Shown piece by piece: positions 17,847 through 28,346 of a DNA stretch of 29,583 bases. The stretch is from Macrostomum lignano (lineage: Eukaryota). A program made the position numbers and the translations under genes. Under the pieces are notes generated by a model. It worked only from the letters and a program-made list of their open reading frames with translations, was not told the origin of the DNA and searched no databases. How positions within the stretch are numbered: the stretch's first letter is position 1; each line of letters begins with the position of its first letter. The stretch spans positions 1 to 29,583 of the forward strand of contig NIVC01004980.1 of the NCBI GenBank assembly GCA_002269645.1, written 5' to 3'.

Positions 17847-18307
17847 TTAGGCATTGCTTTTCACAATCTCTGTGTACTCGGTAGCCAAGCTGGCAGCCGA
17901 CTTGTTCACTTCCTCCTGCTGCCGAGCATCACCGCTGACCTTCAGCACTTGGGCATAGACAACGTCCGGGACCGTCGCTGCTGCCTCTTGTCGATTGCCG
18001 AATGGCTCGGCTCGCCGCCCGACGTCGCACCCATTCAGCAGGGTGTTGCACGTCGATGCCGCACCGCTGCCGCTATTGACGCCCCAGAGTTCGTCCGCTG
18101 ATAGCCCGTCCAGATCTACGTTTGCGCAGTCCTTGCCCCGGCTGTAGGTTGCCATGGGAACCTCTGATGGCGACCAGCTGCCTCGCCTGTACTGGGTCAG
18201 CTTGCGATAGGAGCACCTCAGAACTGATCTCAAGCAGGCGAGCAGGAATGGCCCCGCCACCGCTACGGCGATTACTGTTAGGCCGATTTTCCAGAGATCA
18301 ACTCCAA
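17847..18307 (-). CDS. Receptor exon 13: TM helix + cytoplasmic tail + stop
   Basis: Acceptor CTCTCGCAG|TT; TM LWKIGLTVIAVAVAGPFLLACL followed by basic RSVLR; VVYAQV and TEYTEI motifs; TAA at 17849-17847. Confidence 0.88.
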
Positions 18308-27300: not shown

Positions 27301-28346
27301 CAAAGCTCAGATAAAGCGCACACAGCCCAGCAGTGCGCAACAGTGCCCTTACAGCTCCCTAACAACAGTACCCCCTACAGCTCCCCAACAACAGTACCCC
27401 TACAGCTCTCCAACAACAGTACCCTACAGCTCCCCAACAACAGTACCCCTACAGCTCCCCAACAACAGTACCCCCTACAGCTCCCCAACAACAGTAACCC
27501 TACAGCTCCCCAACAACAGTACCCCCTATACTCGTAGCTCCCCAACAACAGTACCCCTACAGCTCCCCAACAACAGTACCCCTACAGCTCCCCAACAACA
27601 GTACCCCTACAGCTCCCCAACAACAGTACCCCTACAGCTCCCCAACAACAGTACCCCTACAGCTCCCCAACAACAGTACCCCTACAGCTCCCCAACAACA
27701 GTACCCCTACAGCTCTCCAACAACAGTACCCTACAGCTCCCCAACAACAGTACCCCTACAGCTCCCCAACAACAGTACCCCTACAGCTCCCCAACAACAG
27801 TACCCCTACAGCTCCCCAACAACAGTACCCCTACAGCTCCCCAACAACAGTACCCCTACAGCTCCCCAACAACAGTACCCCTACAGCTCCCCAACAACAG
27901 TACCCCTACAGCTCCCAACAACAGTACCCCTACAGCTCCCCAACAACAGTACCCCTACAGCTCCCCAACAACAGTACCCCTACAGCTCCCCAACAACAGT
28001 ACCCCTACAGCTCCCCAACAACAGTACCCCTACAGCTCCCCAACAACAGTACCCCTACAGCTCCCCAACAACAGTACCCCTACAGCTCCCCAACAACAGT
28101 ACCCCCTACAGCTCCCCAACAACAGTACCCCCTACAGCTCCCCAACAACAGTACCCCCTACAGCTCCCCAACAACAGTACCCCCCCTACAGCTCCCCAAC
28201 AACAGTACCCCCTACAGCTCCCCAACAACAGTACCTACAGCTCCCAATAAGTCAGGAATAAACTTACCACTACAAGCTGACATTGTAAACAGGAACAGAA
28301 GCAGAATCGCTAGGAAGCAGCGGTCAGTTGGCCGGCTACTTTGCAT
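17847..28346 (-). CDS. Type I membrane receptor: signal peptide - F-type lectin domain - Cys-rich Ig-like(?) module - 3 Ig-like domains - TM - ITIM/ITSM tail; 13 exons, about 827 aa
   Basis: Hand-built model: complement(join(17847..18307,19217..19406,21938..22074,22178..22313,22963..23123,23205..23379,23936..24141,24774..24978,25065..25267,26321..26405,26514..26731,27027..27254,28268..28346)). All introns are GT-AG with consistent phases (1,1,0,1,0,1,0,1,0,1,0,1). The exon-6 acceptor is uncertain (24978 keeps frame; 25012 does not). Confidence 0.8.
18476..18717 (+). mobile_element. Copy 3 of the hAT-like MITE (in receptor intron 12)
   Basis: Begins CCGGGGTCGGCAAAATCCGGCCC, has a CT-rich core, and ends GGTTCTCTATCTGG...AAAAAAAGTTTGCCGCGATTCCTG. 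It is the reverse complement of the 14368-14686 element. Confidence 0.65.
18756..18917. repeat. 162-bp near-perfect palindrome (63/65-bp arms, 34-nt loop)
   Basis: GCGCAACCTTGGGAATCACTCGGCCGTTTCTATTGGCAACACACACATGTAAGTCGCTATTGG is mirrored by 18853-18917. The loop contains AGTCACGTGACT. Confidence 0.9.
19217..19406 (-). CDS. Receptor exon 12 (second half of last Ig-like domain)
   Basis: CTGCAG| SRTNASSLEISSLNSLTWSFDPMPLPAKALDRKILCTVYQADQTRFQSEHSALFETGTASACE G|GTGAGC; phase 0 to 1. Confidence 0.85.
19540..21890. repeat. 34-bp minisatellite (CTCAGTTGCTGGGTAACCCTAACATTCTCAGATC)n, about 68 copies, in receptor intron 11
   Basis: Unit read directly. Each unit contains AACCCTAA. Variants include GGGCAACC, TAATATT and GATGCTC. 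Confidence 0.97.
21938..22074 (-). CDS. Receptor exon 11 (first half of last Ig-like domain)
   Basis: GGACAG| (Y)TAETEISSCMVDQASIRVTVVTTGGIPPPNSVLCGVGKDAQSVSS |GTGAGT; phase 1 to 0. Confidence 0.82.
22178..22313 (-). CDS. Receptor exon 10 (second half of Ig-like domain)
   Basis: ACTTCAG| TTLKTSTYRLNATRSWGTHVAIVCQVNQSGVHVQSNVQHPLPDVL T|GTGAGT; phase 0 to 1. Confidence 0.85.
22476..22875. repeat. 22-bp minisatellite (CCCCAAACCCCTAATTCTCATA)n, about 18 copies, in receptor intron 9
   Basis: Unit read directly. The minus strand is G-tract rich (TTAGGGGTTTGGGG). Confidence 0.95.
22963..23123 (-). CDS. Receptor exon 9 (first half of Ig-like domain)
   Basis: TTCGCAG| (Y)ECNTVFHVPTRERWIEGAVLDLKVDSSKNNPVPTLHTCSLRTVYGFIALNPIS |GTGAGC; phase 1 to 0. 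Confidence 0.85.
23205..23379 (-). CDS. Receptor exon 8 (second half of Ig-like domain)
   Basis: GCATTTAG| LSSAPSSNGIPTFSLLSKYRLFANKSISRCSIRCYSRSQGSPGTQQPEMKEAQLPQLV T|GTAAGT; phase 0 to 1. Confidence 0.83.
23477..23875. repeat. 34-bp minisatellite (CTCCCCTACCATCTAGAGTTCCCCGATTCCCCAC)n, about 12 copies, in receptor intron 7
   Basis: Unit read directly. There are three C4 tracts per unit (G4 on the minus strand). Confidence 0.95.
23936..24141 (-). CDS. Receptor exon 7 (first half of Ig-like domain)
   Basis: TTTCTCCATAACAG| (E)PPKAVKLLFRDTNPEAEQLPRSQYWPADQLRTIVFFTESAFPKPEHSCLLTGPCLASGTELIPTKSEI |GTAAGA; phase 1 to 0. Confidence 0.85.
24308..24694. repeat. (TAAC)n microsatellite in receptor intron 6
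   Basis: About 95 tetramer units with occasional TCAC/TGAC/TAGC variants. Confidence 0.97.
24774..24978 (-). CDS. Receptor exon 6 (second half of Cys-rich Ig-like module); 5' boundary uncertain
   Basis: DYSKAVCQSEPASVPRLQAAKFQLPVSRPQSEFLFMLSECPQCGLRCSYRCSGQPGALRSISDTILFH G|GTGAGC. The frame is fixed by the downstream exon. The acceptor is either 24979 (in frame, weak pyrimidine tract) or 25013 (better context, 1 nt out of frame). Confidence 0.7.
25065..25267 (-). CDS. Receptor exon 5 (first half of Cys-rich module)
   Basis: ACCCGTCAG| (S)QPSEFLTCEMRSGKVGDCTRNGLYQQRAGRASQLVKACLPCQLTVQDEVPSCQLTQPGSQDVQDLRV |GTGAGT. Only one frame is open; phase 1 to 0. Confidence 0.75.
25292..26238. repeat. 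54-bp minisatellite, about 17.5 copies, in receptor intron 4
   Basis: Unit GCTGCAGGTGAGCTGTTATCAGAGTCTCAGCTAATTACAATCGAGTCAGTCTGG. It produces the spurious 18-aa-repeat ORF 25278..26240. Confidence 0.96.
26321..26405 (-). CDS. Receptor exon 4 (C-terminal strands of F-type lectin domain)
   Basis: CCATTGCAG| LTRFILLRRLVRDQADKIFNFVGLEIEE A|GTAAGT. It corresponds to the F-type 'GRYV...L.LCEVEV' end. Not in the ORF track; phase 0 to 1. Confidence 0.8.
26514..26731 (-). CDS. Receptor exon 3 (F-type lectin domain, middle)
   Basis: ACTTGCAG| (L)KRRAVGTEVLLLGEQVPNGLLQPEANSRCLASLAGLSADGATNGIFQC...CHQTDCAR |GTAAAA; phase 1 to 0. Confidence 0.83.
26742..27018. repeat. Compound (GATA)n(GACA)n microsatellite filling almost all of receptor intron 2
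   Basis: About 10 GATA then about 59 GACA units. The intron spans 26732-27026. Confidence 0.97.
27027..27254 (-). CDS. Receptor exon 2 (F-type lectin domain N-half)
   Basis: TTTTTTACTCAG| (D)GKIAVQQAQIAQSWQSSVYTGNEDYCFMMRPRSLGDWNYFHSGEEPDASGYQWLLIKLTKPARLVAVTVFARPGE T|GTAATC. It follows the fucolectin/F5-8C pattern QSS.Y...HS....W....L.....V.V..R; phase 1 to 1. Confidence 0.85.
27338..28247. repeat. 25-bp minisatellite (CAGTACCCCTACAGCTCCCCAACAA)n, about 36 copies, in receptor intron 1
   Basis: Unit read directly. C-run length varies between units. Confidence 0.97.
28268..28346 (-). CDS. Receptor exon 1 (signal peptide)
   Basis: ATG at 28346: MQSSRPTDRCFLAILLLFLFTMSACS G|GTAAGT. An upstream acceptor-like TTCACTTCAG ends at 28373 (5'UTR intron or trans-splice site). 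Confidence 0.82.

Follow-up and report, generated by a model that had tools for sequence, protein, structure and literature searches.

The stretch of DNA analysed here (hereafter the window) is a complete contig of 29,583 bp from the Macrostomum lignano genome assembly GCA_002269645.1 (Mlig_3_7). Its minus strand holds, between positions 28346 and 17847, a gene of 13 exons that, as rebuilt from the sequence alone, encodes a type I membrane protein of 804 amino acids. The protein very probably comprises a signal peptide, a head domain with the fold of F-type lectins, a cysteine-rich module, three immunoglobulin (Ig)-like modules, one transmembrane (TM) helix and a cytoplasmic tail, in which an immunoreceptor tyrosine-based inhibitory motif (ITIM) is followed by an immunoreceptor tyrosine-based switch motif (ITSM). 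We posit that this lectin-fold head on an Ig stalk may belong to a receptor that signals inhibition through the two tail motifs, and consider this the best explanation overall, with a probability of roughly 40%.

The exon chain was built by reading the minus strand and scoring splice sites; it begins with an ATG at 28346 and its stop codon ends at 17847. All twelve introns are of the GT-AG type with donors that mostly read GTRAGT, and their phases in exon order are 1,1,0,1,0,1,0,1,0,1,0,1. Each of the four stalk modules (M1 to M4) is encoded by two exons, with phase-1 introns at both flanks and a phase-0 intron inside. The 85-nt exon 4 (26405–26321) is required because it restores the phase between head and stalk. 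A shorter exon 3 with a donor at 26692 was dropped, since exon 4 restores the phase and also supplies the last beta-strands of the head; for exon 6, an acceptor at 24978 was rejected in favour of the annotated one at 24909 (ttt cag/CTG). A coding score based on codon usage, with the neighbouring genes as training set, hardly told the frames apart, and ten stop-to-stop fragments of open reading frames gave no match in Pfam (E ≤ 1 to 10 across the Pfam searches). The exons and the features that they encode are as follows.

28268–28346, minus strand: exon 1, start codon and signal peptide MQSSRPTDRCFLAILLLFLFTMSACS (amino acids 1–26); ends in phase 1; hydrophobic at amino acids 7–32; N-terminus identical to PAA46231.1
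27027–27254, minus strand: exon 2, first part of the head (amino acids 27–103) with WQSS, YFH68, the QWLLIKL strand and R99; placed by the family alignment A2, the profile matches to FBP32 and 1K12, and hhalign
26514–26731, minus strand: exon 3, middle of the head (amino acids 103–175) with R106 and the C132/C151 pair; placed by profile match and hhalign
26321–26405, minus strand: exon 4, last strands of the head (amino acids 176–204) LTRFILLRRLVRDQADKIFNFVGLEIEE; most conserved block of the family; strands E151–159 and E169–177 of the AlphaFold2 (AF2) model
25065–25267, minus strand: exon 5, first half of the cysteine-rich, membrane-distal M1 (amino acids 204–271); 23–27% identity to the module that follows the head in paralogues, without an Ig match of its own
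24774–24909, minus strand: exon 6, second half of M1 (amino acids 272–317); acceptor at 24909 as annotated
23936–24141, minus strand: exon 7, first half of the Ig-like M2 (amino acids 317–385); matched by a paralogue-only profile at amino acids 333–427 (13.0 bits)
23205–23379, minus strand: exon 8, second half of M2 (amino acids 386–444); same profile match as exon 7
22963–23123, minus strand: exon 9, first half of the Ig-like M3 (amino acids 444–497); paralogue-only profile at amino acids 443–531 (53.7 bits), and matches to nectin-4 D2, titin M5, CD22 and SIRPα
22178–22313, minus strand: exon 10, second half of M3 (amino acids 498–543) with the F-strand-like VAIVCQVNQSG; module profiles
21938–22074, minus strand: exon 11, first half of the Ig-like M4 (amino acids 543–588); paralogue-only profile at amino acids 544–643 (8.8 bits)
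19217–19406, minus strand: exon 12, second half of M4 (amino acids 589–652); paralogue-only profile
17847–18307, minus strand: exon 13, TM helix, cytoplasmic tail of 127 amino acids and stop codon (amino acids 652–804)
18231–18287, minus strand: TM helix IGLTVIAVAVAGPFLLACL (amino acids 659–677) from a Kyte-Doolittle scan, followed by RSVLRCSYRK (positive-inside)
17946–17963, minus strand: ITIM-consensus VVYAQV (amino acids 767–772), found with the expression [ILVS]xYxx[ILV]
17865–17882, minus strand: ITSM-consensus TEYTEI (amino acids 794–799), found with TxYxx[VI]; its Tyr follows that of the ITIM by 27 residues

With the acceptor at 24909 the product is identical to a protein in the databases (P0018 = PAA46231.1 = UniProt A0A267DA88), which GenBank names 'hypothetical protein BOX15_Mlig034318g4 [Macrostomum lignano]' and which is listed without any Pfam domain. 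Searching with the last 652 residues of the model led to a second protein, P0001 ('hypothetical protein BOX15_Mlig012130g1'), in whose cluster P0018 is placed. A preliminary description of the locus had called the gene hidden. This does not hold, since GenBank and UniProt both list the gene, though without domains; the domain reading is the new part. The single protein of 13 joined exons that the same description had proposed stands, the model with the acceptor at 24909 being identical to the RNA-seq-derived PAA46231.1, and the exon coordinates moved onto another assembled copy of the gene (L001) reproduce the annotated P0001 exactly. The GenBank annotation of this assembly derives from a genome-guided RNA-seq transcriptome processed with StringTie, TACO and TransDecoder (PMC5730564), so that transcripts underlie the exon joins. 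The copies of the gene are nearly identical, so that RNA-seq reads multi-map and are not uniquely assignable to one of them.

Four copies of the gene are assembled, one in the window and three others named L001, L002 and L003. In the window and in the copies L001 and L002 the receptor gene adjoins a poly(A)-binding protein gene, and these copies are therefore syntenic homeologues or haplotigs and not tandem duplicates; this arrangement fits the homeologues or haplotigs of a neopolyploid genome. No further gene was called in the stretch retrieved around the copy L003. Between the window and L001, introns are up to about 4-fold apart in length (556 versus 2034 bp; 2531 versus 1099 bp), while the exons differ by about 1%. 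The coding sequences of these two copies are separated by 17 synonymous and 8 non-synonymous differences, which gives a ratio of non-synonymous to synonymous rates (dN/dS) of 0.148 and a binomial p = 4.7e-6 against neutrality. The ratio is 0.15–0.21 in all three pairs of intact copies, and in these pairs it stays below 0.4 in head, stalk and tail each. The receptor gene is thus transcribed and under purifying selection. The fourth copy, L003 (Mlig034318g1, NIVC01000132.1), matches the window at 100% identity across exons 1–12 and carries indels in its last exon (L003 16066–16523). Its annotated product, P0019, has 676 amino acids and stops inside the TM helix, so that the tail is missing; these indels could be an assembly error or mark a decaying copy.

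The truncating indels of L003, together with the finding that the window protein alone has neither a Pfam domain nor a homologue outside M. lignano, might be taken to mean that the locus is a chance chain of open reading frames, a pseudogene or an annotation artefact. We regard this as extremely improbable in view of the twelve phase-consistent introns, the transcript-derived annotation, the selection on three intact copies, the membership in a multigene family with the same plan and a confident fold prediction. A pseudogene or artefact is effectively excluded.

An exhaustive HMMER scan of 1.84 billion representative proteins with P0001 returned 16 relatives only, and those that were looked up all belong to M. 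lignano. The paralogues of this species (P0003–P0017 and P0021–P0023) share the plan of signal peptide, F-type-fold head, Ig-like modules and TM helix, and have varied tails. The number of Ig-like modules ranges from 1 to at least 7 per paralogue, and P0016 has two partial heads. Some members bear the UniRef names 'MATH', 'Mab-21' and 'IRS-type PTB domain-containing', which seem to stem from artefacts of annotation or from fused models. According to these searches the receptors form a small and apparently lineage-restricted family. A word-index homologue search with exons 1 to 3 (E1–E3) gave no match, though the 175 N-terminal residues are near-identical to P0001 and P0018 in the database, and the same kind of search with a family profile recovered 2 members only; negatives from the word-index search are accordingly weak.

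The relatives provided the material for recognizing the head domain (amino acids 27–204, exons 2–4), which the preliminary description had assigned to the F-type lectin fold. Searches of the Protein Data Bank (PDB) using phmmer with the single head sequence or the full protein gave nothing meaningful. A profile of the family alignment A2, which contains 13 head segments from M. lignano relatives, had two significant matches only in the PDB, both of them F-type lectins, namely FBP32 of striped bass (3CQO, E 3.3e-5) and the eel agglutinin (1K12, E 1.1e-3). Comparison by hhalign of this profile with an alignment of the matched F-type lectin fragments gave a probability of 82.8% (E 9.3e-6) across the core strands. 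The AF2 model of the head obtained with A2 reached a predicted local distance difference test (pLDDT) score of 77.6 and a predicted TM-score (pTM) of 0.81; the model from the single sequence was useless (pLDDT 34.8). When the A2-based model was compared with the PDB by Foldseek, the top matches were lectinolysin, FBP32, the lectin domain of GnT-IVa, the eel agglutinin (AAA) and the F-type lectin domains of SpX-3. The F-type lectins among these matched at E 3e-5 to 6e-4, with TM-scores of 0.55 by query and 0.67 by target, and below them followed the generic galactose-binding-like folds of CBM32, SUN (SUN2), APC10 and muskelin. Taken together, profiles and model predict that the head is a highly divergent F-type-lectin fold, that is, a galactose-binding-like jelly-roll, as had been proposed. 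The fold call is notable because Pfam misses this domain. Pfam matches to F5_F8_type_C and F5_F8_type_C_2 appeared in paralogues only and below threshold. The block LLRK..V.N..DK.MNF...E.EE, encoded by exon 4, is the most conserved of the whole family.

The stalk (amino acids 204–651, exons 5–12) had been described as consisting of up to four Ig-like modules. An iterative search seeded with M3 found many tandem modules in the paralogues, and with the profile of the module alignment A3 every match above noise was an Ig protein, including nectin-4 D2 (1.7e-6), titin M5 (1.4e-4), CD22 (1.4e-3) and SIRPα (2.6e-3), with SYG-2 and antibody constant domains as further matches. A profile built from paralogues alone, with no module of the window gene in it, was found again in the window protein at M3 (53.7 bits), M2 (13.0 bits) and M4 (8.8 bits); it did not match M1. 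Pfam found no Ig family in the window protein, and modules of the paralogues lie at or near the cut-off of C2-set_2 (21.0–21.4 bits versus 21), with weak matches to Ig_3; several paralogues are labelled 'Ig-like domain-containing' in UniProt. Of the two invariant cysteines of the module family, one occupies or adjoins the position of the C-strand Trp and the other belongs to the F strand; from this we infer an intra-sheet disulfide between the C and F strands. At the profile level, M2, M3 and M4 are thus predicted to be Ig-like (C2/I-set-like). M1, which is cysteine-rich and membrane-distal, is of uncertain fold and its Ig identity is unproven, so that three of the four proposed modules stand.

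The membrane topology and the tail motifs agree with the preliminary description. A Kyte-Doolittle scan of the protein finds two hydrophobic segments only, the signal peptide at amino acids 7–32 and the TM region at amino acids 652–683, the latter with basic residues after it. The tail of 127 amino acids contains five tyrosines. Two of these lie in consensus motifs, both C-terminal to the TM helix, with VVY769AQV fitting the ITIM and TEY796TEI the ITSM. When the tail was shuffled 200,000 times, this order of motifs, with the ITSM 15–35 residues beyond the ITIM, arose at a frequency of 6.2e-4. The spacing of 27 residues between the two tyrosines resembles that of PD-1 and PECAM-1, and the ITSM of PD-1, TEYATI, is close to the TEYTEI of the window protein.

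By analogy with such receptors we tentatively propose an inhibitory mechanism. The head would bind a ligand on another surface, which could be a glycan, not necessarily containing fucose, or a protein, and the Ig stalk would keep the head at a distance from the membrane. Once the receptors are clustered by the ligand, a Src-type kinase might phosphorylate both tail tyrosines. The phosphotyrosines would dock a phosphatase with tandem Src homology 2 (SH2) domains, of the SHP/Corkscrew type, and signalling in the receptor-bearing cell would be damped. Siglecs, PECAM-1 and PD-1 work by this logic. As to its biological setting, we infer that the receptor may play a role in immunity, allorecognition or gamete recognition. 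If the mechanism is true, it would open a way to study the recognition of cell surfaces in M. lignano, be it immune, tissue or reproductive, in a model with transgenesis and RNA interference.

Several observations weigh against this interpretation. Pfam reports no domain in the full protein, in the full head or in a head of exons 2 and 3 (E2+E3), even at E ≤ 10. In F-type lectin domains fucose is bound through the motif HX24RXDX4(R/K), and in domains that deviate from it the changes suggest altered specificity or lost sugar binding (PMC5712786). In the head of the window protein the counterpart reads H68-x30-R99-P-G101-ELKR-R106, so that the motif is not present literally. According to the HMMER profile and hhalign, R79 and R86 of the eel agglutinin are aligned with R99 and R106, and the profile match aligns its disulfide C108-C124 with C132/C151. 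Its Asp81 is replaced by Gly (G101), and the position of its His52 is ambiguous, as HMMER places a Pro there and no His is reliably alignable. The family does conserve a His (YFH68) that closes the short strand preceding the long QWLL strand, much like His52, with a spacing of 30 residues and a loop that is 4 residues longer; judged from the model, H68 could be the structural equivalent of His52. The calcium motif h2DGx of the eel agglutinin is absent, the segment aligned to AYNAIDGN reading CFMMRPRSLG in the window protein, and an hhDG motif is found at this segment in no family member of alignment A2. These changes suggest that sugar binding of the head may be altered or lost. The earlier proposal that the receptor reads fucose is not established, because neither the Asp nor the calcium motif is retained and no His can be placed.

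The degraded fucose and calcium motifs could also point to a recognition receptor whose head has given up sugar binding for a protein ligand, like the jelly-rolls of the discoidin, SUN and APC10 type. Such a receptor may serve reproduction or tissue recognition in this hermaphrodite instead of immunity, and its tail may signal in either direction, since ITSMs can switch partners. The protein-binding jelly-rolls SUN2, APC10 and muskelin do appear in the Foldseek results after the F-type lectins, and the lineage restriction of the family is common for reproductive and self-recognition genes. In addition, in the two comparisons with L002 dN/dS is highest in the head (0.32–0.37 versus 0.12–0.16 for the stalk), though the counts are small. 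Against this reading, the two Arg of the sugar-binding triad are kept, together with a strand-ending His that could be its third member, and the head overall is still under purifying selection. We consider this recognition receptor with a protein-binding head improbable. A glycan-sensing head is part of a more specific reading, which we hold to be quite unlikely as a whole, in which Macrostomum evolved a family of glycan-sensing inhibitory receptors with a remodelled F-type head, a stalk of Ig modules with C-F disulfides and an ITIM/ITSM tail that recruits an SHP-type phosphatase. If true, it would provide a convergent, non-Ig-headed counterpart of Siglecs and the first functional ITIM/ITSM immunoreceptor described from Platyhelminthes.

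For the stalk, a profile of M1-type modules gave no Ig match in the PDB and only a spurious one to a phage capsid, and M1 was accordingly not counted among the supported Ig modules. The modules of the window protein lack the canonical Cys of the B strand, where V, S or D is found, and the canonical Trp of the C strand, where S, L or G is found.

For the tail, the ITIM and ITSM are short motifs, the four gene copies are about 99% identical so that conservation of the motifs among them says little, and the tails of those paralogues that could be read show one ITSM-like motif (TEYLDI in P0023) and no other pair of ITIM and ITSM. Both motifs also fit the YxxΦ sorting signal. A protein of the same architecture might hence be an adhesion or endocytic (scavenger-type) receptor, with YAQV and YTEI as AP-2 sorting signals and with head and stalk serving cell-cell or cell-matrix contact or the capture of cargo. 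The best matches of the stalk are adhesion molecules (nectin-4, titin, SYG-2), and the paralogues have the same ectodomain plan on tails without the pair of motifs, which suggests that the function of the ectodomain is independent of these motifs. A generic YxxΦ, however, requires neither the Val nor the Thr at position -2, and the shuffled tails indicate that this pair of motifs, in this order and with a spacing that suits the engagement of tandem SH2 domains, seldom arises by chance. We hold the adhesion or endocytic receptor, the main rival, to be somewhat unlikely, and retain the inhibitory lectin-fold receptor as our working explanation.

The region is eukaryotic in character, with short non-repetitive islands between minisatellite arrays. 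Three further features were identified outside the receptor gene.

1789–3264, minus strand: intronless open reading frame of 492 amino acids, a Cys-loop neurotransmitter-gated ion channel (Neur_chan_LBD 1.4e-34, Neur_chan_memb 1.5e-23)
5809–7413, minus strand: pol remnant of a long terminal repeat (LTR) retrotransposon, with integrase (rve, Integrase_H2C2) and reverse transcriptase-RNase H pieces in different frames, with the channel gene on one side and the poly(A)-binding protein gene on the other
8376–14180, plus strand: poly(A)-binding protein gene with four RRM_1 domains and MLLE; its introns are very AT-rich (29–31% GC at 9–11 kb)

Most introns of the receptor gene are taken up by minisatellites with periods of 22, 25, 34 and 54 and by (TAAC)n and (AGAC)n arrays. 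Such repeats fill the stretches 19593–21861, 22457–22876, 23477–23875, 24308–24694, 25296–26238, 26744–27018 and 27338–28245, and every copy of the 54-bp unit contains an acceptor-like tcacctgcag. Intron 12 contains a palindrome of about 160 bp (18756–18917), with 47-nt arms that are 94% complementary and nested 25-nt arms that are 96% complementary, which looks like an insertion of the foldback or miniature inverted-repeat transposable element (MITE) type. In intron 6, the segment 24190–24260 (…ggaatcgaacccagggac…) resembles a fragment of a short interspersed element (SINE) derived from tRNA; ARAGORN called no tRNA anywhere in the window.

Compared with known systems, the receptor combines familiar elements in an arrangement for which we found no precedent. 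The literature search returned no report of an F-type lectin joined to Ig modules and an ITIM, as the preliminary description had supposed, and nothing relevant on the gene identifiers or on Macrostomum together with ITIM; the combination of F-type lectin and Ig may exist unnoticed in other phyla. The domains assigned here belong to proteins called 'hypothetical' or merely 'Ig-like' in UniProt and GenBank, where Pfam had missed them.

The F-type lectins, among them AAA (1K12), FBP32 (3CQO), lectinolysin and SpX-3, have the same jelly-roll fold and are the best matches in the PDB by both sequence and structure. Their core strands are alike, with QWLLIKL...VTVFAR...RAVGTEVLLLG in the window protein and PWWRVDL...VTITNR...RISGAEINIG in the lectins, and both Arg of the basic triad are retained along with the equivalent of the C108-C124 disulfide. 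The head of the window protein differs in falling below every Pfam threshold, in the loss of Asp81, of the vicinal Cys82-Cys83 and of the calcium motif, in the longer loop that bears the His and in some 20 residues inserted ahead of the final strands. It is furthermore part of a membrane receptor with an Ig stalk. Should the head have lost sugar binding, it would still be a clear case of a lectin fold co-opted into a receptor of the Ig superfamily.

Among invertebrates, the VIgL proteins of gastropods (FREP, CREP, GREP, QREP and HREP) are, like the window receptor, lineage-restricted lophotrochozoan hybrids of Ig and lectin-type domains; they are secreted, with Ig at the N-terminus and the lectin domain at the C-terminus (PMC8878817). 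In the window protein this order is reversed, as had been noted before for FREP, CREP and GREP, the lectin fold is of the F-type, and a TM helix and a tail with signalling motifs are added. Drosophila furrowed and CG9095 are mosaics of an F-type lectin domain with CCP/CTLD and a TM segment (PMC5712786). These two, the discoidin-domain receptors and the neuropilins are, like the window protein, type I membrane proteins whose ectodomain contains a jelly-roll domain of the lectin or discoidin kind, whereas their partner domains are CCP, CTLD, CUB, MAM or a kinase instead of an Ig stalk with an ITIM/ITSM tail.

Receptors of the PECAM-1, PD-1, SIRPα and BTLA type have the same sequence of Ig-like ectodomain, one TM helix, a membrane-distal ITIM and, about 25 residues on, a C-terminal TxYxx(V/I). 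The window protein differs in the lectin-fold head and the non-canonical Ig modules; to our knowledge, neither phosphorylation nor SHP binding has been described from flatworms. Siglecs, with CD22 (Siglec-2) as an example, share the design that the preliminary description had stressed, namely a distal candidate glycan-binding domain, C2-type Ig spacers, one TM helix, and an ITIM with an ITIM-like motif or ITSM. The Ig domains of CD22 among the matches of the stalk profile reflect generic Ig similarity. In contrast to Siglecs, the head has a different fold, with neither a V-set Ig domain nor the Arg that binds sialic acid, and the resemblance is an analogy with no sign of orthology or family membership. 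If the proposed mechanism is true, a flatworm would have arrived independently, and with another lectin fold, at the ITIM/ITSM logic of inhibition coupled to a membrane-distal lectin-type sensor, and the receptor would bear on how often Siglec-like checkpoints for self-glycans evolve.

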